A DNA stretch of 63,976 nucleotides, counting the filler, from Ministeria vibrans ATCC 50519 (lineage: Eukaryota > Protista > Filasterea), in NCBI GenBank assembly GCA_943704425.1. It is 6 parts of 6 records of this genome, joined end to end, with 100 filler letters (N's around TTAATTAATTAA, not from the genome) between each part and the next. Parts side by side here need not be neighbours in the genome. Positions count along the whole stretch, not along the records: positions 23,675 to 42,302 come from CALSCP010000408.1; 5 more parts are not named here. The stretch is one strand, 5' to 3'. The notes below the pieces were generated by a model. That model saw only the letters and a list, made by a program, of their open reading frames with translations, did not search any database and was not told where the DNA came from. Made by a program: the position numbers and the translations under genes. Of the stretch, positions 23,675 to 42,402 are shown in pieces. Numbering within the stretch: the first letter of the stretch is position 1; each line of letters starts with the position of its first letter.

Positions 23675-23756
<82 letters not shown>

Positions 23757-23775
23757 GGCCTCTCACTTATTTCAG

Positions 23776-24451
23776 ATCAGAATATGAGTCGTGGTGCTCT
23801 TCTTCTTGTCGAAATGAGCTCTGCCGGTTCACTCGCCACTGTATAAGCCATCCACAAAAATTATTTCTTTTTTACTTATCCACTTCTACTTATTAGGGAG
23901 TCTACTCCACAAATGCCCTTAAAATGGCAGAACAAAACAAAGGTAGTACAATTTCAATCATATGACATATGTCATACTTTTTACGTGTGTGTAGATTTTG
24001 TGTGTGGTATCATCACACAAACAGTGAGCAGTACTGAGATTGGACTGATCCACTTCACTCCGGGTGTGAATATCACATCCAATGTGGACTCACTCGGCCA
24101 ACAGTACAACGATCCTCAGACCGTAAGCCATCCTTTTTTAAGCACACTATTATTTGGAAATTGCACTCGAAAGGGTGTTTTGACGTGGAGTGACTGAACC
24201 GTTACTCGTACTGCTTTGCTCTCACTCTCATTGACTTTCCCTCACTCGATCGTTGACTTTTACCTACTCTCATTGACTGTCCCTCTTCATTTTTGTTCTT
24301 TCTTGACTCATCTCTTTTTTGTTAGTTGAGTGATCGTGGCACTGACGTGTTTATTGTGGGTCGTGGCATCTGCAACGCGGCCGATCCTCTCGCCCAGTGT
24401 GTGCTCTACAAAGAACTGTGCTGGAATGCCTATGTTGAGCGCACTGAGTGA
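23776..24451 (+). CDS. UMPS: OMP decarboxylase (UMP synthase C-terminal part), 4 exons, 5'-truncated
   Basis: Spliced RGALLLVEMSSAGSLAT|GVYSTNALKMAEQNK|DFVCGII..HFTPGV..DSLGQQYNDP|..RGTDVFIVGRGI..WNAY. Whether it is fused to OPRTase cannot be seen. Confidence 0.9.
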
Positions 24452-24685
24452 TCAAATCTTCTTCGATCGAAGAGAATGTGAATGCAGAATTGCTTAGCTT
24501 TGTTCGTGTGCATAATTCCAAAAGAACAAAAGAATGACGTATTCATAATGATTATTATTTTATTAATAATAATAGTTAAAAAAAAAATCCACATGAAACA
24601 AAAAAAGAAATCTCTCTCTCTATCCTCTCACACGCAAACTTCATGCAAATCAAACTTCAGATGAACATCAATACTCGTTATCATT

Positions 24686-26551
24686 TCATTGTGGGCATTC
24701 CTCTTCTTCTTCCTCCTCCTCCTCTTCTTCTTCTTCTTCTTCTTCCTCCTCCTCCTCTTCTTCTTCTTCCTCCTCCTCCTCCACTTCACAGGGTTCGCTC
24801 CGTATTTTCTTCACCTTGCGTTCCAACTGATTCTCTGCCATGCGCTTTGGGGTTGGCAATTTAACATACTTCGGCGTGACCGTTTGACAGGCTTCGACTA
24901 TCTCCGATAGGACAGTGGGTAGTACATGGGCTCTAACGCCCTCTTGCGTCAACTTCGTGACCACACACTCTTTGCGGATCAGAGTTGCCGTCTCTCCATC
25001 GCTTCTTGTCGCAGAGTACCGCGTAGCCAGTTCCCCTGCATCGTGGCGCGCATCGTCAAACAAGCTCACGAGCTTCCAGTATTCTGCTTTCGCCTTGTTG
25101 AAGCGCACCGTGCAAGGATGCCTTTTGACTCGCGCTTTAGCTTTCCTTAGCTCAGTGTTACTCTTGGCCTCTTTCTCAGCCGCCTGAAGCTCTGATGCCA
25201 TTTCAAAAAGTTTCATAAACGTTGAAGCCCTCTCGTCGCTTTCTTCAATATGCACCGGAGGAAAGCCGCTCACTGTTGGGTAAGACTTTCCACTGCGGAG
25301 ACGGCCAAAGATTGCACTTTTAAGGCGTGGAGCGACACAGCGAAAAAACGCAAAAGCACTTGCTGCAGCAGCCGGCTGAAATGACTTCTCCTTGTCCCCC
25401 ATTGCCCAGTCGCATATGCCCTTGATTACAATAAAAGGTACCTCATTGGCCCAGCTCAGCGCTGTCAGGCCCGCAACTCCCTCCATCTCTCCACCAATAG
25501 GATCGTAAACGCCAACTTGCTCTACAAGTTTCACGATGTCTTCATGGCGGCCCTTATCGTCCAGTAACTCTGGTCCAGACAGAATCGTGCCAACGCGCGC
25601 CTGGCAGCGGCGAGAGAAGCGTGAACTGCCCTCAACCAACCGGTCCGCATTTGAGCGGTTCCATGCCTTTGCCTCCTCCTCCAGGCAGAAAGCAGCAAAA
25701 TCAGGGATGCGGTACGGCTTGGAGCGCAACGTAACGACACTGCCAGAGCGAACATAGTCGTAGGGAACGATCATGTTGGATACAATCACGTCGGCCAGGC
25801 GCAAGTCGCTCTTGTTTTTCGGGCAAATCGAGCGTGGAGTGCCAAATGCGACGCCCACAAAGACAACACTAAGCGGTTTGAATAAGCGAGCGCCCTCTTG
25901 GGTGACTTTGATAGCGCCCATTGGACCACTTGAACCAGGACGGGTTCGCACAATGGCAACTGTGCAACCTTCAATCTTCGCAAGAAAGAAGCGAATCTCC
26001 GCTGCATCGTAGTGATAAAACTCGCCAGGTTGATATGGCTCCACGACATTGTTAACCGCCTGCCACTCTGCCTCGTTCACCACAACAAGTAGAAAATCGC
26101 ACTCGCAAGGCGACTGAAGAGCCTTAGAAGCTCGAAGCGAGTTACCCACTTCCATAAACGGAGTCGTTTTGTGCGGGATGTTCATCGGTTTGCCACAGTA
26201 GGTGGGATCCAGCGAGGTCTGCCTATCGACCAAGTCATCCGCAGTGGTGGACGGACGTACGTTGGTGACAGCGGCGGCGCTTGCATCGTCATCAACGGCC
26301 GTTGATGTGATGGAAGTCGTAGATGCCGATACATCGGGAGCAATGCGCTGTAGTCTTGAGACGAGGCCGGGAATTGTGGCGAGCGTTTGGAGGACACACT
26401 CGCCGAGTTCGTCGTTGATCGACCGTGTCCCCCCGTCGGGCTCCGACGCCGACCGCGTTTGGTAGTGACTTGATTGTTGAGTTGCAGTTCCATTCGGGGT
26501 GGAAGACAGGGGGGGTGGGACCGCACTGGCTCCATTTTCTGGTTTCGACAT
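24686..26551 (-). CDS. Intronless PNP_UDP_1 (nucleoside phosphorylase/MTAN fold) protein, ATP-nucleosidase-like, with poly-Glu tail
   Basis: FLLVVVNEAEWQAV, VVFVGVAFG, LADVIVS, GTILSG, IGGEMEG, FIVIKGICDWA..K.KSFQPAAA; 621 aa from ATG 26551. Confidence 0.85.
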   Translation of the reverse strand: MSKPENGASAVPPPLSSTPNGTATQQSSHYQTRSASEPDGGTRSINDELGECVLQTLATIPGLVSRLQRIAPDVSASTTSITSTAVDDDASAAAVTNVRPSTTADDLVDRQTSLDPTYCGKPMNIPHKTTPFMEVGNSLRASKALQSPCECDFLLVVVNEAEWQAVNNVVEPYQPGEFYHYDAAEIRFFLAKIEGCTVAIVRTRPGSSGPMGAIKVTQEGARLFKPLSVVFVGVAFGTPRSICPKNKSDLRLADVIVSNMIVPYDYVRSGSVVTLRSKPYRIPDFAAFCLEEEAKAWNRSNADRLVEGSSRFSRRCQARVGTILSGPELLDDKGRHEDIVKLVEQVGVYDPIGGEMEGVAGLTALSWANEVPFIVIKGICDWAMGDKEKSFQPAAAASAFAFFRCVAPRLKSAIFGRLRSGKSYPTVSGFPPVHIEESDERASTFMKLFEMASELQAAEKEAKSNTELRKAKARVKRHPCTVRFNKAKAEYWKLVSLFDDARHDAGELATRYSATRSDGETATLIRKECVVTKLTQEGVRAHVLPTVLSEIVEACQTVTPKYVKLPTPKRMAENQLERKVKKIRSEPCEVEEEEEEEEEEEEEEEEEEEEEEEEEEEECPQ

Positions 26552-26911
26552 TCTAAAAATCGAGTGAAACACGAAACGTTTCAAAACGTTGAGGAGAAAA
26601 ATGTGGCTTATATTATGAAAACACGCAGGAGCAAGTAAAAATACATAGTACAAACAAAACACCGGGAGTATTCAAACTACAAACACACTCGAGCGGTGAA
26701 TATCGCAACAAATTGTTGGGTTTGAAACAACTGATGCAAAGGCACTCCAACCCTCCTACGGCCTGAGCCCTGGGGATAACTACCAGCAATAAGAGCGATG
26801 TTGACGCCTGCATTGTACATAAAAGACCACTCACCCAACNNNNNNNGAAGACTGACACATTACACAATAACATTCAATTAATACAAAAAGAAAATAAATA
26901 ATATAAAAATA

Positions 26912-27205
26912 AGCCCATAGACCCACTGATGTATATACACATTACACCCATGAGAAGAATGTACGGAGGCACAGGTAGACCCTGTACACGACAGTCCCCG
27001 GTGCACCATTGCGACGACTCTTAGGCTCAATGCGCCGGAGGACCCTCGAAAGAGAACAGGAGATACAATAAATAATTGAATAAAGAAAATAGAGGAAAAA
27101 AAGTTTACGCAAGAAGATGAAAATATAATACAATGAAGAGTAGTACACTGCTTCCGCCATTTAAACGCCAATACAGACAGACCGCCATAGGCTAGCCTCA
27201 AGAAT
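26912..27205 (-). repeat. Dispersed repeat family, permuted or tandem copy between the PNP gene and KNL1
   Basis: 26912-27064 is the reverse complement of 5141-5278; 27115-27142 is identical to 33955-33982. Confidence 0.85.
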
Positions 27206-27280
27206 AATGAATAATTGATCACACAATCATCGACAATTATCATTGAGTTTGGTTCATTCCTCAAATTTTTACATCCAAAC

Positions 27281-30200
27281 ATGGACCACCTGTTCACCCG
27301 AACGCCATTTGCAGTGCTCTCAGATGAGGCGCCTAAAAACGCCGAAAACGCAGGGGCAATCACCTCACGAAAGAGACGAAGTTCCGTACGATTTCAAAAA
27401 AAAACAAAAAAAAATTCAAAACTTGCTCGTTGCAAGACATCGCCTCTATTCGGGCGCATTTGGCTCGACAGCCCATGCCTAGCCATCATGCACATGCATT
27501 ATGCCCTCTGTGTTGCTCTAAAACCCCCAGAAACGCCCATTCTAACCCCAAACATCCGATCCGCCGTCAGATTTTGAAATCGCCCGGTCGAGGAGCGCTC
27601 ATTGAGCGCGATATGAACCAAGCGCCCGACGCCCAGTCGCACAAAAAGGCTCGACTCAGCGTTGGGCGACGTGTGTCGTTTGCCCCCACCGATCAGGTAC
27701 GACTGAACATCGAAACGCGAAAATTTTGAAAAAAAAAAAAAAAATCAATGTTTTAGCGCTCATCAAAAACCAAATCTTTAAATTGTAGCTTCGCTTCTAT
27801 CAGAAGAACGCAGCCGAATGGCAGTCCCCGTCGCACGACAATGAGGAATCAAGTGATTTGAGTGCCATTGATGCATCGGTGGACCAGGAGCAAGAGCCAG
27901 AGCAAGAGGAGGAGGTCGCGAGGGAAAGGGCGCAACAACAGACAACGGCGCTCGACAACGTGCTTGTGGCGTCGCGCATTGGCTCGCCCATTGTCCTCAG
28001 TTCGCTCATGGACCCGTCGCCAGACCACCGTCGTCGTCGCTCCACGTTGAGCCCGGCACGTCGTCGCTCCACGTTGAGTCCTGCGCGACAGTCGCTCGGT
28101 GTGCTGCACGAGTCCGCCTGCATGGACATGACCGAGTGTGTCGGTGGTATTCTCGAAGAGACGGACGACCAGAACGAGGAAGAAGACGATGATGGCATGG
28201 AGATGACGGCGTGCGTCGGTGGCATCCTGGCTGAGGCAGCGCAAGCAGAGGTGGAGGCAACACCCGAGTCGCCTGGTATGGAGCTCACCGAGTGCGTTGG
28301 AGGAATCGTAGTGCAAGCAGAGGTGGAGGCAACACCCGAGTCGCCTGGTATGGAGCTCACCGAGTGCGTTGGAGGAATCGTAATGCAAGCAGAGGTAGAG
28401 GCAACACCCGAGTCGCCTGGCATGGAGCTCACCGAGTGCGTTGGAGGGATTCTCACTAACGCAGTCGCCGACACGACCACGTCCAGTCCTGGCATGGAGC
28501 TCACCGAGTGCGTCGGAGGCATCCTTGCCAGCACAGAGACAGACACAACGGCCAGCCCTGACATGGAAATGACCGAATGTGTCGGTGGAATTCTTTCCAA
28601 CAACAACAACGATGATGATGATAACAACGAAGACAACGATGAGAGTCCCGACATGGAAATGACCGAGTGTGCAGGCCAGGGTATTCTCAGCCACTCCAAC
28701 GCCAACACTACCACCACCAACAACATGGAACTCACTGAATGTGTTGGTCAAATCTTCACCAATGACAATAACACCGACAACGACATGGAACTCACCGAAA
28801 CTCTTCCAAACACCTTCATCTCCATCGGGCCCAAAGACACAGACTCAAACACACCCACCGCACTCGACAAAAATCCTTCAATGTCATCTCTTGATGTGCC
28901 CGATGCAGTATTGTCTCTCCCGGATACACCTCTCACATCCAAACAAGAGGAACCCCTTCTTTTGGTATCACACACTTACTCTCATTTCCTCACTCACTAA
29001 AACAAATTCAAATTAATAATTATGATTGTTTTAGAACAAGGAGAACAGGAAAGAAGAATTCGAATGCGGCTTGGAAGAAGAAGAAGAAGAGGAAGAGGAG
29101 GAGGAGGAGGAAGACGAAGAAGAGTACGAGAGCACACCAATCACGTTCAGTGAGTTCCTTGCGCGCACCAACACGCGCTTCATCAACAATCTGACGAGCC
29201 GTCGTCGTACGACACTTAACGTGCACCACATGAACACGTGTGCGTCGTTAAATGTCGCTGAGCGGCCCGCCGATCGCATTGTACTTGCCTGCCAGGTGCT
29301 GCCACAGCTCGAGGCGTACCAGTGGGGCTGTGACTATCTGGTGGAGACCACTGCAACGGTGCGCGATGCCACCGTGGCCCTTGAATCGGCTCTCGACGAG
29401 CGCAACCCGCAGTTGTTTGCGTCCGCTCAGCGCAGTGAGGTGGAGCTCGATGAGCTTCGCGAGGACATGAAGATGCTCAAGACGTACAGTCGGCTTGAGA
29501 CCAAGCGCCGCTGGTACGAGTGGCGCAGTAAGATTGAGAGTAATGTGCGCGAGTCGCTCAGTGAGGAGGTCACTGGTCTCAGCGAAGACCTCACGGCTAT
29601 GTCAGAAATGCGCACACGCCTCACTGGCTCGCTTGATGCGCTCTCGTCATCTGTGCAAGCTGAGATGGCAGTCACGCTGGAGCGATTGCGCGAGACGTGC
29701 ACCACCGCAGAGGACCAGGAACGTCTCAAGGGGCTGTACGCCTCCGTATGTGAACAGGAGCAAGTCATTGCGGCCTTTGAGGAAGCCATTGAGCTTGACC
29801 AGCGCCACGCCGAGTCGCTCAAGGCCCAAGCGGCTCGTGCCGAGCTGGAACACGAGGCACTCAAAGCGGACCTGACCAACGCACAGGCACAGCTGCTCGC
29901 GACCCAATCCCTTGAAGTCAACAGCGAGGCAGTCCAGGACGCACACGACCGCTGCGACCTTCTCATGGGCTTTGCGTCGTTCCAACCCGTCACACTCTCC
30001 GCCGACAACATTTCACTATCCTTTGCGCACAGTCACCTTCAGGCGCACTTCACCCTTGCCCCGTCTTCCACTCAGCTTACTCACATTGCGTTGGAACTGC
30101 CGCCAGCCACCTCTACCACACTCACCCAACTCCTCTCCACCATCACACCCACATCTCTCCAGCTACAACGCGACGACAATGGTCAGAGTGTCTCCTCCTT

Positions 30201-30367
30201 CTCAACCCTCAAATCCACTGTGGACCGTCTCTCACTCCTCACGGGTCGCTGTGAAGACCTTGCTTCTGACATCGACTCTCTCGCTCTCTCCTTTCCAACC
30301 ACGCTCAACATTGTCGACAACACTGTAAGTGGGCACACCACCGTACTCTGATGCACACGCGCGCACA

Positions 30368-30422
<55 letters not shown>

Positions 30423-31073
30423 CACCAAACTCATCATAAAAATGATGTGTCACAGACTCGCACACACACAATCACACTAACTTTTTTCCATGCTACATCA
30501 CTATAGTGCGAATTGACTGTTGAGTTCTTCAGCATGGCCCAACACGTGCTGGTTGAGGCAACTCTGTCGCTAAACCCCTCAGCTTATCCCTTTGGGGGGA
30601 TGTCCGTTGCCACTCAGACTCTCATTGGCCAACAATCAATGTAAGTTTGAATTATTTCACTTTGGTTGTGTTTGTTGCTCTCAAATTCTGCTTAACATTA
30701 ATAACTAAAGCACATGCACAAACACTCCCACAGTAATACTAATTAGTTATAAAACACAAAAGAATACGATATACGTACACGACAACATAGCACAATACCA
30801 ATCGAATATAATTATGTCTCACAAACACGAGACTCTCTCTCTCTCTATTACATTTTGTTCTCACAACATCTTTGGTCACAAAGCTAACTCACTTTTGTTC
30901 TTTCTCCCTCCTCTCTCTCTCAAACTCTCTTCTATTATTTCATTCTTTTTCTCTATCACTTTCATATCTCTATTAGGGGTTCTCTTGTCAATTCTGCTCT
31001 TAATGCCGTGGAACCTTCGTACGGCTATTTGGACTGTGTCTGTTCTGCTGTCCAATCTGCCCTCAAAATGTGA
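27281..31073 (+). CDS. KNL1: Kinetochore scaffold KNL1/Spc105/Spc7, about 6 exons
   Basis: SILK motif formed across intron 27386-27570 (RRSS|ILK), RRVSF PP1 motif, ten M[ED][LM]T repeats, Spc7-like ITFSEFL..WYEWR, coiled coil, RWD-like C-terminus ending ..SALKM* at 31073. Confidence 0.93.
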
Positions 31074-31157
31074 TTTTTTTCTCACTTTCTTTTTCCTTTT
31101 TGAATTTGAATACACTTTTATTTTTCAATACAAAAATACGCAAACAAACAAGTCAAA

Positions 31158-31836
31158 TCAAAAGACAGACATTTTCTTGACCGTTTTTTTGGCAGTGGCG
31201 CTTTTCTCGAGGGACATTTCCTGAGCTCTCAAGTGGGCAATTTCCCTCTGATACTCAGCGACTCTCTTTTGTGCATGTTGACGGACCAACGAGTCCTTTT
31301 TGCTGTCGCGAAGTTTCGTCTGATAGTGAGTGACGCGCGATTGACAGAGTCGGATTCGCTCAGTGAGTTTGGACAGTTTGACATTGAGTGACTCACTGCT
31401 GTCGCTCTTTGACCCGTTTCGTTCGTGTTCGCTTTGGCGTTTCGTCTTCTCGTTCTTTCGCTGTTCCTCCTTTGAATGTGATGCATTAAGCAGCGCAAAC
31501 AGTCCCGTTTCCTCCACTGCCACCTTCGCATTGGTCTTTGTTTGACGTTGTGCGATTCGCTCTTGTCTTTTCTGTGCACTGTGCTTGGACCGAATGAGCT
31601 CGCGCAGTTCCGGATCGACACAGTAGTCCAATGAACGACCAGCGGGCAGGACACGCACAGCAATGGGGCGTGTGAGACCGCCCGGAGCAAGTGCAGTGCC
31701 CGGTTGATAACCCATCTGCATCATCAGTTTCAGTCCGATTCCCTTTGTGTGTGCCTCAAACGAGCCAAAAGACGCGGGGACGGTCACGTCGCGTACTTCC
31801 TCATCATCATCCTCTTCTTCATCGTCGTCGTCGTCG

Positions 31837-31873
<37 letters not shown>

Positions 31874-32633
31874 CGTTGTTGTTGTTGTCGTCGTCGTCCT
31901 CCTCCTCCTCACCGCGTGCAAACAACTCTTGTTCTTCTACTTCTTCTTCTTCTTCTTCGTCTAAAGCGGTTTGCTCTTCGCGATGAAACAACGGCCGAAT
32001 CTGATCGCCTGAGACGTTCAGCGTTGCATCCCGTGCCGCACCTGCCGTCAAGAGACGTACACGATACTGATGTGTGTGTTCGTCGCTAGTGTGCACGGCT
32101 AAGATGGTAGCGAGTGCCCACAATCCGGTGCTGGGAAGTTGAACGTAGCAGGGACGATGCGGCGAGAGTGCTCCTGGCTGGCAGGCAAACAGGCGCTCGG
32201 GCGGAACGAGCTTCCCATGCGAACGAGCACACGGGTCGGCGGTGCATGTTCCGTTGAGGTGCCGTGGACAGGGCACCATTGCTTCCCGTGTGGGGGTCGT
32301 GTAGTACACCAGCACCGCCCGCCCGTCCCCCCCCGCCACCATCGCATCCAGCAGCGTCGGCATGGGCTCCGATGCGTCGCCCTCGACAAGCACATGGGTG
32401 CCTGAAGCAAAGGTGGGTGCTGCTGGCTCGAGTGCTGCCTATGACGAGAGAGAGAGAGTGAGAGAGTGAGAGTAAGAGACAACAAATGCCTTGAGTTGTA
32501 CTTTCAATTCTCCTGCCGCTCCAGCAAGCATTTCGCGAAGACTGAGCATCTCTTCAGTGAGCTCAGCATCTCCCATTGCATCAATGGCGGCGATTTGCGC
32601 CTCCATCGCGTCGAGCTGTTCTTGAAGAGCCAT
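31158..32633 (-). CDS. ZGPAT: CCCH zinc finger / Tudor-like / G-patch protein, 2 exons
   Basis: YTTPTREAMVPCPRHLNGTC..CARSHG (CCCH), GLWALATI, G-patch FEAHTKGIGLKLMMQMGY, VLPAGRSLDYC, terminal KKMSVF. Confidence 0.88.
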
Positions 32634-32765
32634 GGCAAGAGATTACAAAGTAATTAATTATAATGCGATCGCCATTGAGTGTGAATTGTCAATTGACCAT
32701 TCGCCAAAATTCAAAAAAACATTAATAATAATAATATTATTATTAATATTCTGTCTGATTTCTAC

Positions 32766-33776
32766 ATGTATCGCGCAACCGTTGTGATCATCGGTGTGCT
32801 ATCCATTGTTGCATCAAGCGCGGACCCGTGCGCACCGTACGGCGGCAAGGAGCACGCCCAAAGCGACGGCGTTTGTTGTGTTGCTGTCTGTGGCGAATTC
32901 TGCGGCGGAAGCAAGGCGAACGACTGCGACCATGGCCCAGGCGGTGGAGACGCCTGTTGTGCTAGTCATATTCGAGTTTCGGGTCGCGAATGTGGCGCAG
33001 GCGTTGATGCGCCCTGTTTGTTGTTCGCCAGCCCGCAAATCTCGCTCGCCGACGACTTTACGACCCGCAACGACTCCATGTGGACGTATGCCAACGAGAA
33101 GCTGGCCAAAGTCGAAGATGGCGTCACGTGGTACCTCAAGAACCACTCTGCGGTCAACATTCCCTTGAGCAGTGGCGAGGGACGCGGAATGGGCATTGTG
33201 TGCAACGACCAGCCGTGTGTGCACAACCCATCGCTGTGCCACGGTGCTCTCACTGCGAGCGATCATGTCCATTCGGTTCGCACCGTGAGCTACGGCGAAC
33301 ATCGCTTGCGCTTCCGTCCGCCCTACAATGCTAACAACACAAGTCCCGACGAGGTGTACGCCTACTTCACGGCGGGTTATGCCACCGGCAAACCCGCCAA
33401 GACCCTTGCCTCCAACGCCGTTCACGCAGAGAAGAACGTCTCATGGTGGAACGAAATGAACTTTGGCTTTCGAAATGATGCGCGAGGACACGGCCCATCG
33501 AGCCATGTTGTCTCGTGCGAATGGCACGCCGACACGGGTCACTACGAAGAGTTCTATGTTGATTTGGGATTTGACTTTCGCGATGGTTTTCACACGTATG
33601 TCCTTCAACATCGCGTCGACTCGCTCACATGGATTGTCGATGGACGCGTGATCCACTCGACGCAAGCGACCCTCTCCCATGAGATGGGTACCAGTCTCAT
33701 CGTTCGCTCCAATGGGCACCAGGCCATGTCGGAAGTGCGTGCAGAGTATGCGTACTACTCCTTCGTGTCCTACTAA
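32766..33776 (+). CDS. Secreted GH16-fold protein with N-terminal Cys-rich module and degenerate catalytic motif, intronless
   Basis: Signal peptide; CC..CG..CGG..C...GG..CC..C..PC module; GH16 lichenase-like LGFDFRDGFHTY..LTWIVDG; the ExDxE site reads EMNFG. Confidence 0.8.
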   Translation: MYRATVVIIGVLSIVASSADPCAPYGGKEHAQSDGVCCVAVCGEFCGGSKANDCDHGPGGGDACCASHIRVSGRECGAGVDAPCLLFASPQISLADDFTTRNDSMWTYANEKLAKVEDGVTWYLKNHSAVNIPLSSGEGRGMGIVCNDQPCVHNPSLCHGALTASDHVHSVRTVSYGEHRLRFRPPYNANNTSPDEVYAYFTAGYATGKPAKTLASNAVHAEKNVSWWNEMNFGFRNDARGHGPSSHVVSCEWHADTGHYEEFYVDLGFDFRDGFHTYVLQHRVDSLTWIVDGRVIHSTQATLSHEMGTSLIVRSNGHQAMSEVRAEYAYYSFVSY

Positions 33777-33954
33777 CTTCACAACGAAGCAACTCCCCTC
33801 TCCTAAATGCAACGCGTATCATGAAGAATCCTGCCCCAACAACCCCGTACATTGTACATATTACAATGTACATAATGCAGTATTTCGTCAGACGTATCAC
33901 ACGCGAGTGTCACACTGATATTTTATAAATGAAGTGAAAATGTTACTCCAAAGG

Positions 33955-34118
33955 AGATGAAAATATAATACAATGAAGAGTAATACTGAATAGAATGGTT
34001 CCGCCATAGACTAGCCCCAAGAAGACTGAAGATGGAGCACCCATAGACCCGCAAATTCGCTCTCGCAACGACATCAAAGTAGGAAAAAATTCAACAATGC
34101 AACAAAACTCGGAGGACC
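33955..34118 (-). repeat. Dispersed repeat family, degenerate copy upstream of CDC25
   Basis: 28-bp identity with 27115-27142, plus shared blocks CCGCCATAG.CTAGCC.CAAGAA, CCCATAGACCC and CGGAGGACC. Confidence 0.75.
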
Positions 34119-35851
34119 TTTTTCGCCCTCTTCTCAACAGTTGTCACGGCTTGCATGAGTAACATACATCCACTACAGAGTGTACCAGCCCCTCTCGGGC
34201 TTTGTACAGCCACAACCCCCGCCATACGGCCGTACGGAAAAACGATAATGTGTTGTTCCCTTCACACCCTCCTACATCAACTTCTGGCCAGCATACGCCA
34301 CAACACGTGTATAGCATCCAACACTGATACTACTCATGCGGGTGATACAATCACCTCGACGGTATTGGCTGTAGCAACAGCTCATTCTAAAATCGCACAT
34401 TGCAAAATTCACACTTCGCTCTCTTACGACTCACTCCTCTCCACGACTTCACCACATCACTGCATTGTCCAGTACTCTCCACCGCCACCTCTTACTCGCC
34501 CTACGGTATGCGCAGCGATCGCAGCTGCCTCTCCTCCTTTTTCGTTTGGCGCGAGATTTGAAAAACGAAACGTAAGCAAGCAAAATGTGACATCTGACAC
34601 CTCTGGCGGTTTTCTGATGTGGCACCTCATCCCAGCCTCACGCCGGCGCTTTCGACTTCGGCGCTCCGCCATTATTATCGACTACCACATCTCATTGTGT
34701 CCCCGGGAAGCTATGCACTCCTGTCTCTCCCCGATCTTTCCCTGTCCAAATCCGTCCAGTCGAGATTTCGGCCTCTCAGGGCATGACGACTAACCCCACC
34801 GCCATCCGGCCTCTTCTACACCCATTCTTGCCGGTAGCATGGCTGTATCTGTCCCTCCTTGCCGTTCCTCTCTAATCCGCGCCTGATACCTCCCTCTGGG
34901 CAGATTACTCAACTCTCATGTCTCGAATATCTAACAGTCATTGAGATTTAAGTCCAAAACCCATTTTTTTTTCTCCCTCCCACCGCTCACTGTCCACAAG
35001 CATCGTGACGTTCCGCCGGCCCTGGTTGTCCTCTTGGTACACTTTCTCTCCCCCCCCTTCCTCCCACGCCGTCCGCGCCCTCCCTTCGTCCTGGCGCGTG
35101 AGACAACTCAAAGCATTTTTTAACAACAACAAGCAAAAAAAAAAAAAATGAAAATGAAAATGCTGTAAAATCTCAACGCCGAGAGCTTGCCGCCGACTTT
35201 CTGCACAACGTGTGGACCCCAAATGGTTCACTAGACCGCACTACAAGTATCGCTTCTCGCCGGGCGGCCGTCCAAATCTAAAGTTTGCCGCTCGGGTTTT
35301 GTGTTTGAAACGACTGTTTTCGTCGGGTGTTCAAGCCTCTCACAGGGCGCCTCTCCCCCCAAATAGCCCTTTGGAGGTCCATTATGCTGCTCCCCAAGCG
35401 AATCCCCCCCAATTCGCCCTGGATTTCTTCTGTTACACCTCAAGATTCGCCACGCACACAAAACCCGACCTGCAAAAAAAAAGAAAAAAAATTGCCCTGT
35501 CCGAGCTCTTTCTCCTCTCTAATCGTCTCTTTGGCATCGCCCTGGCATAACTCTATCCTTCATCGTGCTGTTCCGCCGGCGCATAGCTGCGATTTCCTTG
35601 ATTCTTGTTGTTCGCTCTCGTTCTACCTATTTCCAACACAATCTCTCGAGCGCTCATGAGACCTCCTCAGCGATCTCTCGCTGCCCCGCTTGCCCCACGT
35701 GGCCCATTCAGGGCGTGCGCTCTTGCCTTCCCTCTTGCGTCCCCTCTCCTTCCCCCCCTCCTTCTCATCGGGTGCCCTTTTTTCCTTCTTTTCCTCCCCC
35801 AAGGTTGAATTCCTGTCATCGTCGATCAAGCGCCCCGTTTTCCCTTTTGAA

Positions 35852-38551
35852 ATGACCGGATCTGGTGACGCGAAGTCTACTGATAGAACTGGCGATGCTC
35901 CTCGACCCTTCACGTAAGTCTTCTTTCTTTTTTCTCCCTTTTTTTGTTTTCACTTTTCACAATATTTAATTTTACTCGTTCAGTTCGTTTGGTGTATTTT
36001 TTTTTTTCACGCTCACTTACTTTTCCAAGACATGCTCAATCGCGCCTGGCAATCTGTTCCCACCTCACCCAACCATCCTTTCGTATGCTTTTCCCACAGC
36101 GATCTGACCAATTTGCGCCCACCCATGTCACCGACCAAACTGCGCTATGACGAAGATCAGCCGTCCTTTCAAATGTCGCCCGCCACCGAGCCGCCCGCCT
36201 CGCCCCTTCTCAACACTACTGGACCACCATCACGCGATTCGGGTGCCGGCAGCGTTCCTGGCACGCCCACCAGCGTGCGTGCTCGAGTACATCCGTACCA
36301 ACGAGAAGTGCGCTGTAACTCGTCCACAGACGTAAACCTCGTGCGCTTCGCACGTCAGCAGCAGCAGCAGCAGATGCCGTCTATGAGCCGCTCCTTGCCG
36401 GGACGCAGCAAACTCGTGCCTGCACAGTCGCAGTCGCTTACCCCCACGTACTTTGCAACCGCTCCGATGGATCTCGACGGGTCGTCAAGCAGCCGCGATC
36501 GCTGCAACTCGGACCTTGGACACACCATTCGTCCGCCGCCCCACTCGTCGCATTCAAGTTCGCCCATTGGTATGTGTAACTCTGGCATGGAGGGTGCGTC
36601 GCGCAATAGCGTTGGTAGTGACGAAGTGTTCACTGAGAACGTGATGCTCCCCGTGGCATGTGCTGACGACGAGTGCGAGTCGCAGCACAGCAGCAACAGC
36701 GGTTCGACTCGTCGATCCCGCTCAAACACCTACGGTAGCGACGGTCGCTCGCGTGTCCCCAACACACCCCTACGTCAACACACGCCTCTCACACCCAAGC
36801 AGTCGCAGGCCGATTTCTCGGGTCGTCGTTCGGTTTGTGGCACCCCAAGTCTGGACGGCGACAGCAACGACCCCACCGGTCCCGTCTTCCGCACGGTCGA
36901 GGACGATTGTTCCCTCGCCGACATCTTTGATGGTGATGATGCCATGTCTGCCTGGCACTCCGACGACTGCCTTCAGGAACAGCAGCAGCTGAATTTCCAA
37001 CAACAGATGCAGTCCCGCCATGGCGTCTTCCCTCAGCATCATTCGTACGACTCGCTCTCGTCGCTCTCGCGCTCCGACAGCCTTACTACCAACTTTGCGG
37101 CCATGTCGACAGTGACACCCAGCCAGACGCCAACGCCCACTCGTGACATGGCCAAGGAGCAAGCAATGGCCGCTGCCATCTCGGCACCTCCCTCGAAACT
37201 CACCAGCAGCCCTAAATTGCCGCGTGCTCTCATTCGCTCCCAAACCCTTCACGGTCGCCCTTCGAGTCCGCTCACGTCGGTTGTTGAAGATACTTCCATG
37301 AGCATGGGCGCTGGTCGCCCCGCTCGCTCCTACCGCAGCCAAGAATGTGTCGCGTCCCCCTCCTCCTCATTTGCCGACTCTTCCTTTGTCGGTTCCAAAT
37401 GGTCTTCACATGTCCTCCCAATGCCCGTCCAAGAGCTCCAACAGCACCAGCAAGGGTCCATGCTTGAGGAAGAGGAGTCTTCTACCAGTACGCCTGCGCG
37501 AACAACAACAGCTGCTACTGCCACCGCCGCTATCATTGCTCGAATTGCCAAGACTGAGACTGCTGGTACCGTTGAGCGCACCGAAGACTACGGTGTGACC
37601 CCGTTGCATCATTCGCCCGATATTGTGGCTGTTCCCGTACCGCGCTGTCGCCGTGTTCAATCTTGCATGTTTTCGTCTCCCGCTACCCTCTTCCGCGCCG
37701 TCTCGCCCACGCCCAACTTTACCTTTGGCACCTTCAACGCCTTCAACCCGTCCGCACCCCAGCCTCCGGCCAAGGCCGCCATGACCCCTCGCGACGGCTC
37801 TCGCACCGCCTCCGAAGTGTACGGCTCACAATCGACTCTGACGGGCGCCGATTGCTACGATGGCCTGCGCCATCCCGGCGCATCGTCTAGTGCGATACAA
37901 CACATGCTCACACTGCGTGCCCGTGCAAGCTCTATGTGTGAGATTGGTCCCACTCACGAGCCCATTCCCCATCTGCTTGAGACAGTTGACGAGCCTCAAT
38001 ACTCCCACAACGTCAATCGTACCATCAGCCCGTTCACCGTACACGAACTCATCGGTGGTGTCCACAGCGATAAGTTTGACTACTACGTCATTCTTGACGC
38101 TCGTTTTGAATACGAATTCAACGGTATCCCCTAAATTGCGTTTGCGTCTTTTTCGCGGCTTTGTACTGACTGAATAGTTTATCTATTAGGCGGTCATATT
38201 GCCAATGCACTGAACAAGTACGATCCTGTCGAGTGCAAGGCATTTGTCTTTGGTGAACTTCTCGATGTAAGGAAATATTGGTTTTTCTTTTCTTTTTCTT
38301 ATTCATTCCTTTTTGTGTAGTATTTGAAGAAGGAGAACATTGACACACTGCGGTGTTGCATCGTGATTCACTGTGAGTTCTCACACTCGCGCGCCCCAAA
38401 AATGTTCGACATGCTTCGTCAAGAGGACCGCAATCGCAATGCGGCGCACTACCCTCTCCTTACTTTCCCTCAAATGTTCCTCATCAACACCGGATACAAA
38501 GGAATGTTCACGGAATACCCAGCGGTACACACACACACACCATAGACAGGA

Positions 38552-38610
<59 letters not shown>

Positions 38611-38823
38611 ACTCAACTTCCCAAATTCAGTGTGTGCAGTTTCGTTTCGTTATACTCATTGTTTCGATATGCTCTGTAGGACTGCACACCTCAATCTTAC
38701 CTGGCCATGGACGACCCTGCGTACACTGCCGAGCGCAATGCATGTCTTGATCGCTGGAAGAGCGACACTTCTAAACCCAAGAAACGCTCTCGCTCCCAAT
38801 CTTGCGTTTACTCTCACTATTAG
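35852..38823 (+). CDS. CDC25: M-phase inducer phosphatase Cdc25, about 5 exons
   Basis: Long S/T-P-rich N-terminus; ILDARFEYEFNG|GHIANA; catalytic HCEFSHSR (HCx5R); LRQEDR..HYPLLTFPQMF..GYKGMF; C.PQSYLAM. Confidence 0.93.
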
Positions 38824-38991
38824 ATTCTATTATGCTATCACTTAACTAAAATTCGCCATCGCTTCATCACTCTCATCGCGATTTTCTCCTGGCTTTTACT
38901 TCTTGCTTCATTTGTACAATAATGCATCTTTAATTGGAACATACTTTTTTCAAGGAACCACGCACATATACTTTGACTGAGTAAAATGTTT

Positions 38992-41459
38992 CTACTGAGT
39001 GTCAGTTTTGGTGTAAAAGAGAACATAGGGAGTCAAGTGCGATTGCGAGTGCGGCACAAGCACAGACCGAGTGAGTCCTTCTGAGCACATTCTCACGTGA
39101 GAATCGTCAAAATACACAAATTGGTTTCCTTTTCAAGAGAAAGGCATAGAGATACGAGAAAGAAACAAGTGTGTGATTGTGAATGGCACAAAATATTCAA
39201 CAACACACAAAATTTCTAACCAGTTTCACTTTCCGTCATCTGTTCCTCTTTTGGTTCCCGATTCGGAGGCTTCTCGGCCACTTCTGATTTCTATCAAACA
39301 ATATTATTATGACCATCATTAAAAAATACGTTTGCTTACCTTTTGAAAGAATGCTCCGATACGTTTCATTTTTGGTTCTTCTTTTTTTTCTGATTCGTTT
39401 GTGCTTTTTTCAACATTTGCTTTTGACTAAACAGTCAAGTATTAATAAGTAGACATCAAAAGGTTTCAAGTTATTATTTTTAATTGGTTTTACCGTTTTT
39501 GAGAGTTTCTTTGTAAAAAACGAGAAGATGGATTTCGTTTTGACCTAAAAATAATCATTATTGTTTTGCATTGCGTACACTTTTTTCTTACAGTCGAAAC
39601 TAAGTTCTCATTTTCTTCCGTTTCAGATTCATTTTCACTTTCATTTTCCTATAAAATCATTCAATTATAAAACAAAATGAATAACAAAAAGTCGAAGAAG
39701 AATACAACCCATTTATTAATGAACAAAAAGTAATAAGAAAATAAATTATTAATGATAATAATAATGAAATTACTATTATTAACATACTATTTTTTGTTGT
39801 ACCATTTTCTGTCGCTTTTCCGTTTCTTCCGTTTCAAATTCCGTTTCTTCCTTTGGTCTCTTTTTTCCCGTAAAATATGAAATTTCTTTTTCCTTCTTTG
39901 AACTCTTATAAAAATATAATCAGAATAAGAGAGACTTTTTGTTGGTTCTTACTGATTGAGCAGTTTTAGGAAGAGACAAAAATGAACTCATTTCGGAATA
40001 ATCGACAGACTGGTCAAAATCTATATGAAAGCCGGTGAGGATATCATCATTCCTTTTCGCTCTTTCTAACTTGAATTGAGAATGTTTGAGTGTTTCTTGT
40101 GAATGAGCACAGTGTAATGACCATTTTGCAGCGAGATTCCACTGTGCAAAATTACGCCAAAGAGTTCTGCAAAGAAAGAGAGTGAGCGACAATTATTAAA
40201 TAAATCAGAAGAGCAATCAAATCACTTTTTGTAATCGAATTGGATCGATAACGTGAGTGTTGTTTCGTACCGTAATGCGTTGACTCATTTGTGTTCTTCT
40301 CAAGATCGAAAAGGAATGGGATTTCCATTGGATTGAGCAATTTCGATGCAAACTGTGTCGTGTATGAGAATCGTTTCAATTGAATTGTCAATATGTCCGG
40401 AAGAGAACTGCAAATAATCACAAAAAGAAGTGATTCAGGGGAGATGAAATGAATACGAATTGTGCCGACCTAAAAGTGAGCGTTTTTTGTGCTTCGGTGA
40501 GTCTCTGACAATCGGGACAAAAGTACTTTTCACTTCCGCGAATGCTAAACAAACAAACAAACAAAGTTAAAGCAAACACACACACACACATTTACATAAA
40601 ACAAACATTGTTTTTAGAGTACTGTTCAGTTTTCATTTGAAGTTGAATGGCGGAAACGAGTGAGTCACTCAGAGGCACACTGAGGTCGAGAGACGACTCC
40701 AGGGTGTCGCTGGTGTACTCACATTCATCGCATCGGAGACGGGAGCGCGAGTGGAAGGAGAAAGGGACGAGGATTGGGAGTTGAGTGTGTGGCGCAAACA
40801 CAAGTTGTGCTTCGGATGCGTGAGCGAGAAAGAAGCGAAGGAGCTCGTGGACGTCGTGCTGGCGACGATCAGCGTCTGAGAAGAGTGGGGAGGCGCGGGT
40901 AAGGGCAGCAATGAGGGTGGACGGGGTGAGGGAGAGCGTGGGGGAGCGCAGAAAGGAGCGTGCTGCGGACGCGTCTGGCTGGGAGGCGTAGTCGCGCGCA
41001 TGCCGCTGCAAATCGTGCCGGAGCTGCGCGAGTGCGTGCACGACGGGATAGCGTGCTCGAAGTGCCTCCCCGTGCACCGACAGGAGATGGTCGAGAGCGT
41101 TGGAGAGTCGCGGGAGTCGAGACAAGAGCTGAACGAGAACATTGACGAAACATGTTGTGCCCAGATTGCTCTACGAAGACCTTATTGCCAAGGAGACATC
41201 GAACCGGTGCTACTTACTAGTCCTGAGCAAGGAATTGGAAGCAGCGCAGGTTCGGGAGACGCAACGGTGGTCATTTCACACTCGTCGTTGTCAACCGTGT
41301 CTGCCTGGACGGCACCAGGCCGCGTGAGCGACAGACTGGGACGCGACACAGCCCCCTTCAACGATGGATCCTCTGGCATGAGTGTCAGAGCAAAAGAAAT
41401 GGTGATGATCGCACCAGTCGCGAAACTTTGGACTCACTGTGGACTTCAAAGTCTATCAT
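38992..41459 (-). CDS. USP1: USP1-like ubiquitin-specific protease, many short exons
   Basis: Cys box GL|SNLGTTCFVN, QHDVHE, GSEKYFC, LTIQLKRF, His box LFGVILHSGISLQNGHYT, a large insertion, then YFDDSHV..TPYVLFY. The His box and the insertion position resemble USP1. Confidence 0.8.
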
Positions 41460-41531
41460 GAATCATGATCGATTCAAGTTTGAAGTTAAAATTTTCTGTC
41501 TGAGTGTTACCTTTCAAAAATAGAGGCAATC

Positions 41532-41904
41532 ATGTCCAAGTCAGTACCTGGTAAGTGATGCTTGTCAGCCATTGACTCGCAACGCACAAGGAGAACCCCC
41601 CTCGCCCCTCCCAAAAAAATCCCGTGGCAAACAAATGACCTAAACCTACAAAACAACGGTCGTACTGTGCGCTGCTGCGTGTGTGCGTGCGTGTGTGTGT
41701 GGACGGGAGTCTAATGTGCCGCGGGGGCTTGTGTGTCTAGACGTTGCGTCCGTGGCGGCCGCTGTTGAAGCGAGCAAAGATGTTCTGAGCGATTCCGACA
41801 AGACATTCCTCGTGTCCTACCTGAAGCGCGCCGACGTCGCCCAGGCCCTGGAGACCTACCAGCTGTGTCGCACCAAGACCAAGCCCAACTCGACTAATGC
41901 GACC
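41532..41904 (+). CDS. 5' exons of an unidentified gene (short helical N-terminus, possibly L27-like), truncated by scaffold end
   Basis: ATG at 41532, GTAAGT donor, AG acceptor at 41740, open exon DVASVAAAVEASKDVLSDSDKTFLVSYLKRADVAQALETY, GTAAGG donor. Confidence 0.5.
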
Positions 41905-42402
41905 GTAAGGAGAATGAGAGGAGAAAGAAGCTAAAGGAGAAAGAAGAAAAAAAATTGGGAAAAAACGCGTCGCTTGCTCGCCCTGATGTCTCTCTGGGGG
42001 CCACACCGCCGCCATCAGCCTGCCTCTTCCCGTGGCCTACCCCTCCCCGCCCGATTCCGCTGCTGCTACTGTCTCAATCACTGTTCTTTTTTTTTTTGCT
42101 TTTGACTGTTTGTCGTCTCGTCATTTGTTTGCGATTTTTACTGTGCTCTCCAAAAAGGCCGGTTCTTCGCCAGATCGTCTGTGGACACTTCCATAGGTTG
42201 AATCCACCTGCTTTTTGTTTGATAATCGGTCGCCAATTGCGTTTTCCACAAACACTCTTTTTCGTTTTCATCATTCATGTTGCACCATTGTGTGCCATTC
42301 AANNNNNNNNNNNNNNNNNNNNNNNNNNNNNNNNNNNNNNNNNNNNTTAATTAATTAANNNNNNNNNNNNNNNNNNNNNNNNNNNNNNNNNNNNNNNNNN
42401 NN

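Follow-up and report, generated by a model that had tools for sequence, protein, structure and literature searches.

A stand-alone PNP-fold protein of the protist Ministeria vibrans related to nucleosidase effectors of bacterial defence systems

Cap17, the effector of a type III CBASS of Escherichia coli KTE188, DtcC of the Detocs system of Vibrio alginolyticus and two eukaryotic domains of the same clade are ATP/dATP nucleosidases (Rousset et al., bioRxiv 10.1101/2023.01.24.525353). In that preprint, this defensive clade is the sole PNP clade enriched beside defence systems and provides effectors of CBASS, Avs/NLR-like, pAgo, DRT8 and Detocs systems; its domains are toxic when unregulated, and they are found as well in fungi, corals, sponges, arthropods and nematodes. 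With such eukaryotic carriers on record, and two cases of ATP cleavage among them, the domain class is thus already known. Here we describe a gene of the filasterean Ministeria vibrans ATCC 50519 (assembly GCA_943704425.1) that encodes a stand-alone protein of this kind and belongs to a small family of eukaryotic proteins. It lies in a window (the whole stretch of DNA that was analysed, 63,976 nt with filler included), in the piece taken from record CALSCP010000408.1 (positions 23,675 to 42,302). Its PNP domain very probably falls in the non-housekeeping, conflict-type branch of PNP proteins and, as far as sequence can tell, we lean towards the view that the protein is a regulated N-glycosidase of adenine nucleotides, probably ATP/dATP, descended from bacterial defence effectors. 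In window coordinates, the gene and the parts of its product are as follows.

24686..26551, minus strand: complete intronless open reading frame (ORF), 621 aa plus stop (ORF list, sequence)
26111..26551, minus strand: N-terminal low-complexity region, probably disordered (residues 1-147; 50% S/T/P/A/G)
25292..26110, minus strand: PNP/MTAN-fold nucleosidase domain of the conflict-system type (residues 148-420; Pfam, AlphaFold2, Foldseek, tree)
25037..25291, minus strand: linker and long helical coiled-coil-like segment (residues 421-505; AlphaFold2 helices 435-504, at a predicted local distance difference test score, pLDDT, of 74-87)
24857..25036, minus strand: small conserved C-terminal segment (residues 506-565; family alignments, low model confidence)
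24800..24856, minus strand: basic patch (residues 566-584; sequence)
24689..24799, minus strand: acidic tail with a run of 28 Glu (residues 585-621; sequence)

Like Cap17 and DtcC, the M. vibrans protein has a non-housekeeping PNP_UDP_1 domain in which the catalytic Asp is kept (reported as D472 in Cap17 and D353 in DtcC; D381, aligned with D197 of MtnN, would be the equivalent here); it also matches the PADLOC model of CBASS PN effectors and groups with a REC-PNP protein from a Detocs-like operon. Compared by published description, it differs from both in being eukaryotic and monocistronic, with an accessory module that is C-terminal and belongs to no family. It has neither the TPALS/SLOG ligand-binding domain (PF18178) of Cap17 nor a CD-NTase partner, its neighbours being KNL1 and UMPS and, unlike DtcC, it gives no Response_reg match in Pfam and has no kinase partner. 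No member of the eukaryotic family is among the BLAST matches to CheY/CheB receiver domains, in a search run without the window protein itself. The closest relatives outside the family (30-38% identity) are bacterial PNP effectors of NTP-dependent conflict systems linked to EAD, death-like, TIR or STAND domains (EAD1, EAD8, bDLD1, nSTAND6), which share the signature GVAFG..Y..R..R..GGEMEG..K.ICDW..Q..AA but carry adaptor or sensor domains, of which there are none here, and differ in the motif that follows the catalytic Asp. The NLRN protein of H. variabilis, the DDAN protein of A. queenslandica and the Z-alpha PNP of arthropods and nematodes are, by published description, eukaryotic carriers of the defensive clade too, two of them cleaving ATP/dATP. 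However, the partners reported there are NACHT/TPR, Death and Z-alpha domains rather than a coiled coil, a C-terminal segment and a charged tail, and the hosts are fungi and animals rather than protists. Finally, MtnN and other MTANs have the same fold and the same catalytic Glu, Met-Glu and Asp, but these are single-domain proteins of about 230 aa that form a separate clade and whose pocket residues are replaced in the protein described here.

Assignment of the fold is straightforward. Residues 173-399 score 30.2 bits with Pfam PNP_UDP_1 (E 3.7e-7), above its gathering score of 25.1, and the motifs by which the initial annotation had recognized this domain are all in place, i.e. GVAFG at residues 233-237 (nt 25841-25855), GGEMEG at residues 353-358 (nt 25478-25495) and IKGICDW at residues 376-382 (nt 25406-25426), followed by Q392 and AA395-396. 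An AlphaFold2 model built with a 102-sequence alignment, which replaced a single-sequence model with a mean pLDDT of 37.7, has a mean pLDDT above 90 in most 10-residue blocks between residues ~150 and 420. The nearest solved structures are MTANs (Foldseek template-modelling scores of 0.82-0.84 at 15-20% identity; VIA-align Z of 26.2 and root-mean-square deviation of 2.3 Å over 225 residues), and a profile search of the PDB sequences returned MTA/SAH-type nucleosidases (MTANs and related futalosine enzymes) and no immune PNP structure. The catalytic residues E162 (nt 26066-26068), M356/E357 (nt 25481-25486) and D381 (nt 25409-25411), which are equivalent in the alignment to E12, M173/E174 and D197 of MtnN, are all kept and invariant in the alignment, and K377 (nt 25421-25423) is listed among the catalytic-site residues. 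A homodimer prediction for residues 148-560, made without an alignment, scored 0.01 and is evidence neither way.

Several lines of evidence separate the domain from housekeeping MTAN. A column-by-column comparison of 150 bacterial relatives, 8 family members and 6 MtnN sequences revealed that the family has conflict-type residues where MTAN differs: F236 (G78 in MTAN), Y264 (H98), R268 (V102), R276, W297, G353-G354 (A-V), K377 (R193), C380 (S196), W382 and Q392 (L211). Five of these (F236, Y264, R268, K377 and C380) are likewise found in at least 91% of the 150 bacterial relatives, and Y264, R268 and R276 are clade-specific. The best NCBIfam match is to the MtnN model, but the score with this equivalog (NF004079) is 34.4 bits and does not reach the curated cut-off of 169. 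Conversely, a profile of the eukaryotic family gives at least 96 bits to every conflict-type PNP and at most 31 bits to every MtnN. When residues 140-590 were searched exhaustively with phmmer against 1.84 billion representatives, 2077 matches were obtained in which, after a few close eukaryotic relatives, the top matches are multi-domain bacterial proteins (1e-25 to 1e-14, with 30-38% identity across the whole domain); the best MTAN in the PDB, which is smaller by four orders of magnitude, did not get beyond E 0.03. Word-based protein searches retrieved only three distant PNP proteins. A Gemmatirosa MTAN locus offered no usable ORF and was excluded. Among defence-specific models, the PADLOC CBASS effector model 'PN-superfamily' was matched at E 2.8e-8 (30.7 bits), only over positions 412-490 of its 506.

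Phylogeny gives the same picture. Housekeeping enzymes split from the rest in a quick tree of 90 rows, with a Shimodaira-Hasegawa-like approximate likelihood-ratio test (SH-aLRT) value of 98. A careful maximum likelihood tree of 45 rows was then computed under LG+C20+F+G4 by posterior mean site frequencies (PMSF), with ultrafast bootstrap and SH-aLRT, its housekeeping rows being six MtnN and DeoD, with Udp, XapA and Amn left out. A stem of 4.8 substitutions per site, supported at 100/100, separates the family and the conflict PNPs from these housekeeping rows. All eight eukaryotic sequences fall in one clade (98/92), whose sister is a pair of bacterial PNP-transmembrane proteins, P0001 and P0060 (99/92), and the surrounding radiation comprises Detocs-like REC-PNP, TIR-PNP, EAD- and death-like-domain PNPs and a STAND-linked PNP. 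The PNP domain clusters with the REC-PNP, TIR, EAD1, EAD8, bDLD1 and nSTAND6 proxies, apart from MtnN/DeoD. By profile, residues and tree, therefore, it is unlike housekeeping MTAN and groups with bacterial conflict or defence effector domains, as the initial annotation had suggested; a grouping with MTA/SAH nucleosidases was looked for in the tree and is not there. The phylogeny that had been called for delivers the split from MtnN/DeoD (100/100), while Cap17, DtcC and NLR-PNP are represented in it by proxies only. Membership of the non-housekeeping branch is thus solid.

The bacterial relatives carry TIR, EAD1, EAD8, bDLD1, nSTAND6, AAA_22, TPR and WD40 domains, and one of them, from Kouleothrix, is named a TIR domain-containing protein. 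The gene of one REC-PNP protein, P0039, comes after those of a GAF-GAF histidine kinase and a REC protein, in an operon that, by its predicted domains, has the Detocs layout. This Detocs-like three-gene operon (L181 1119-5967, also L182 and L183) was seen on 17 metagenome contigs; its sensor kinase has GAF-GAF domains in place of the TPR sensor described for DtcA, and its middle gene encodes a 550-aa REC protein with a faint TCAD9 match. P0001, of the lineage that is sister to the eukaryotic family, is a bacterial PNP protein that also has 621 aa and whose C-terminal region is hydrophobic and transmembrane-like. At this locus (L184 1002-5001), its gene is flanked by a phage-type integrase/HTH_17 excisionase pair and sigma-70-like regulators, suggesting that it is on an integrative element.

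Since the eukaryotic clade lies in or beside a bacterial radiation, an ancient bacterial origin is plausible, and this part of the earlier suggestion of horizontal acquisition stands. A recent arrival does not fit, because the gene is part of a conserved eukaryotic family. A scan of viral contigs and a search of BFVD gave no evidence that the family is viral, the former finding six loci with distant relatives only (27-31% identity) and the latter giant-virus nucleoside phosphorylases that are similar at the fold level only. A tblastn search of plasmids found one distant Rhizobium match.

The eukaryotic family is monophyletic, eukaryote-only and rare, since 1.8 billion proteins contain about eight representatives of it at 50% identity, and it includes a sequence from the ancyromonad Nutomonas longa. 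The members besides the M. vibrans protein are listed below.

P0004: partial, from a JGI metagenome
P0005: 447 aa, on a Logan contig of mRNA-like length
P0006: 523 aa, on a Logan contig of mRNA-like length
P0007: 490 aa, without introns, from a contig of 17 kb
P0008: 504 aa, from EukProt, Nutomonas longa
P0014, P0156 and P0157: up to 591 aa, without introns; the contig also encodes a mitochondrial carrier and an intron-split enolase
P0020: 305 aa, more divergent

The Trinity-style name of P0008 ('comp..._c0_seq1') suggests a transcript. Full-length members have a common plan, in which a variable N-terminus is followed by the PNP domain, a coiled-coil-like helical stretch of ~60 residues and a small C-terminal segment, with a Lys/Arg patch in most of them and, usually, an acidic tail. 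The coiled-coil-like segment occupies the same position in P0005-P0008 and P0157, Lys/Arg-rich patches are at the matching place in P0006, P0007, P0008 and P0157, and the acidic tails of P0005-P0008 are shorter than that of the M. vibrans protein. In a metagenome scan, the only contig among the matches listed was the already known one encoding P0157. A full-text literature search returned no description of such a protist family, which is weak evidence of absence. What appears to be new is therefore not the domain but a rare, monophyletic protist family with a stand-alone architecture and a conserved C-terminal module that belongs to no known family. As an aside, the contig encoding P0007 also has, in its GC-richer half (0.59 vs 0.47), a 1557-aa ORF with no Pfam match (L003 6396-11069, minus strand), and the contig could be of protist or possibly viral origin.

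Outside the catalytic domain, the M. vibrans protein is much as the initial annotation depicted it. The N-terminal region is of low complexity and is modelled at low confidence, with a mean pLDDT of 32-64 per 10-residue block (below 50 across most of it), although a short CGKP motif (residues 118-122) is common to it and to the homologue P0006 in the alignment. The unassigned region of ~150 residues corresponds to residues 421-584, which are helical, Lys/Arg-rich and without a family match, and the poly-Glu tail is the 28-Glu run. Segment 506-565 has a pattern that recurs in the family, T..V..hV.P..L..I and then h.hK, and the basic patch resembles a nuclear-localization signal, which may point to a nuclear protein. 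Pfam found in the C-terminal part only coiled-coil-type chance matches that differ between family members, a family profile of this part had nothing below E 0.25 among the PDB sequences, and residues 405-590 had no usable match in the ESM Atlas. These comparisons support the view that the C-terminal region is an undescribed module, as had been proposed.

The genomic setting is eukaryotic. From the first ATG the reading frame gives 621 aa; the mechanical ORF begins further upstream, with a GTG at 26662, and the stretch in between is hydrophobic and non-conserved. As previously noted, the intronless ORF is placed between the last UMPS exon and the KNL1 gene. KNL1 (27858-30351, plus strand) is firm (Pfam MELT_2 5.6e-23, Spc7 6e-27, and Knl1_RWD_C), with two GT-AG introns seen, of about 70-90 nt, and an RVSF-bearing first exon upstream; the KNL1 exon was searched alone. 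The UMPS exon (24326-24451), which lies downstream of the PNP ORF, tail-to-tail, contiguous with it and gap-free, weakly matches the C-terminal part of OMPdecase (E 1.2e-3), short of the gathering score. The repeat element that had been reported upstream is absent from 26552-27800, an interval that contains nothing but poly-A/T tracts and, at ~26841-26847, a 7-N assembly gap; tandem repeats nearby consist of the poly-Glu codons, a TC microsatellite and the MELT repeats of KNL1. Nor did the idea of a possibly mobile gene hold, since no transposon features or mobility signature were found around the gene, no paralogue elsewhere in the piece, and its GC content at third codon positions, 0.556, is only slightly below the 0.60-0.67 of neighbouring exons. 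An exact look-up of the PNP protein and of one neighbouring product in a protein collection found neither. The gene thus looks like an old resident rather than a recent or mobile insertion. A mobile element was rejected, repeats and transposon features being absent, as was bacterial contamination, in view of the eukaryotic neighbours KNL1 and UMPS.

Some other features of the window are worth recording. In the KNL1 gene (27600-30351, plus strand), an N-terminal RVSF (PP1-docking) motif near 27670-27690 precedes a series of about ten MELT-like repeats (M[ED][LM]TECVGGI) at 27858-29000, among which three are near-identical 72-nt tandem copies (97% matches), and the Spc7 and RWD domains are at 29071-30351. 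Long runs of Asn, Asp and Glu in a 411-aa G-patch protein (31158-32393, minus strand) suggest, together with the poly-Glu in the PNP protein and in KNL1, that this genome is prone to homopolymeric amino-acid tracts. A single exon at 32766-33776 (plus strand) encodes a protein of 336 aa that starts with a hydrophobic signal-like segment, has a Cys-rich region and weakly matches GH16 (E 2.4e-5). At 36032-38545 (plus strand), a 700-aa disordered Ser/Pro/Gln-rich ORF ends, by eye, at the start of a rhodanese/Cdc25-like domain, and the HCEFS..R.P motif of the exon downstream, also picked out by eye, suggests a Cdc25-type phosphatase. Between this gene and a UCH-domain gene (40592-41125, minus strand), positions 38675-40674 are AT-rich (GC 0.34-0.37 vs about 0.5-0.59 elsewhere) and could be a long intron, a repeat or an intergenic spacer.

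The scenario that we favour for the PNP protein would run as follows. By homology with MtnN, E162 would position the attacking water, with E357 binding the ribose hydroxyls and D381 supplying the proton to N7. ATP/dATP would be cleaved to adenine and ribose-5'-triphosphate, as in Cap17 and DtcC. The Arg and Tyr that replace the hydrophobic 5'-alkylthio pocket of MTAN could hold the phosphates, and it is from these substitutions and from clade membership that a triphosphate specificity may be deduced; ATP/dATP is accordingly a probable substrate, though with only a slight preference on our part. Since unregulated domains of the clade are toxic and the C-terminal module is conserved across the family, the enzyme might be held inactive until this module triggers it, be it by oligomerization, by binding of a partner or by release of a charged autoinhibitory tail. 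Activation would drain ATP and the cell would be halted or killed, for example during virus infection. The lineage would probably have entered eukaryotes once, from bacteria with defence-effector relatives, and have been an ordinary resident gene since. Descent makes an immune or cell-death role plausible; an immune role proper is a tentative proposal, to which we would give somewhat less than an even chance. A bolder version, which we hold to be doubtful, would have the family act as a eukaryote-specific one-protein antiviral or suicide switch, in which an ATP nucleosidase of bacterial abortive infection has gained a new C-terminal sensing or oligomerization module and an autoinhibitory or nuclear-targeting tail, at work from ancyromonads to other protists, for instance against giant viruses.

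A number of observations weigh against this scenario. The Cap17-type PADLOC model (30.7 bits) scores no better than the MtnN model (34.4 bits), and the PADLOC match alone is therefore not decisive. The placement in the published 'Cap17 clade' was made via proxies identified by architecture, in a tree without verified Cap17, DtcC, fungal NLR or sponge DDAN sequences. Moreover, an approximately unbiased (AU) test does not reject a position of the family outside the sampled bacterial radiation, beside the housekeeping stem (log-likelihood difference 4.0, p 0.24), so the tree does not settle nesting in bacteria and hence the donor. Just past the catalytic Asp, the family (CDWGM..) differs from its bacterial relatives (CDWADGKK). 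Pfam, PADLOC and NCBIfam find only the PNP domain and no known sensor, adaptor or death domain, and the protein is without the sensor or adaptor domains that made the published eukaryotic cases convincing. There are no conserved neighbours either, the three genomic copies of the family sharing no flanking genes, and the M. vibrans gene is single-copy in its piece, among housekeeping genes.

Other explanations can be given. A conflict enzyme could have been domesticated for a non-immune task, i.e. regulated turnover of nucleotides or nucleosides or signalling, possibly in the nucleus, with the coiled coil and tail serving localization or the binding of chromatin or proteins. Such a role, which we judge unlikely, would suit a stand-alone gene that is single-copy in the piece among housekeeping genes, close to its neighbours in composition, with no sensor domain found, and conserved across distant eukaryotes including an ancyromonad instead of being patchily expanded as immune families often are; the basic patch and acidic tail do recall those of nuclear proteins. 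Nevertheless, all characterized members of the defensive PNP clade and all the architectures of the bacterial relatives point to conflict systems, and a family this rare, with about eight representatives at 50% identity, is more in keeping with an accessory gene than with a core function.

That the protein is a housekeeping MTA/SAH or purine nucleosidase of methionine or purine salvage, equipped with extra tails, is quite improbable. Its nearest solved structures are MTANs, its four catalytic residues are those of MtnN and the MtnN model is its top match in NCBIfam, but at 34.4 bits against a cut-off of 169. In the MTAN pocket, Y takes the place of H98, R that of V102, F that of G78, K that of R193 and C that of S196, the split from six MtnN and DeoD is at 100/100 with a long stem, and the family profile gives MTANs at most 31 bits and conflict-type PNPs at least 96. 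Least probable is that the gene stems from bacterial contamination or was left behind by an old gene transfer and is now untranscribed or decaying. An intronless gene amid intron-bearing neighbours, with a 7-N gap between it and KNL1, could raise the suspicion, but the 621-codon frame is intact with all catalytic and clade-invariant residues kept and it is contiguous with the UMPS 3' exon without a gap. In addition, the homologues on two other eukaryotic contigs are intact and intronless, and the Trinity-style name of the Nutomonas homologue suggests a transcript. We thus come back to a regulated adenine-nucleotide N-glycosidase of the conflict-system branch as the favoured reading.

Very little is understood of innate immunity in protists, and the eukaryotes known to carry bacterial defence domains are mostly fungi or animals. 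With the family described here, free-living protists, a deep-branching ancyromonad among them, have a defence-type PNP domain that is intact, in a compact, expressible and testable architecture whose accessory module matches nothing known. If it does deplete ATP upon infection, nucleotide-depletion immunity would reach a new part of the eukaryotic tree, together with a new regulatory domain; if its role proves to be a housekeeping or nuclear one, the family would clearly exemplify the co-option of a conflict enzyme for another use.

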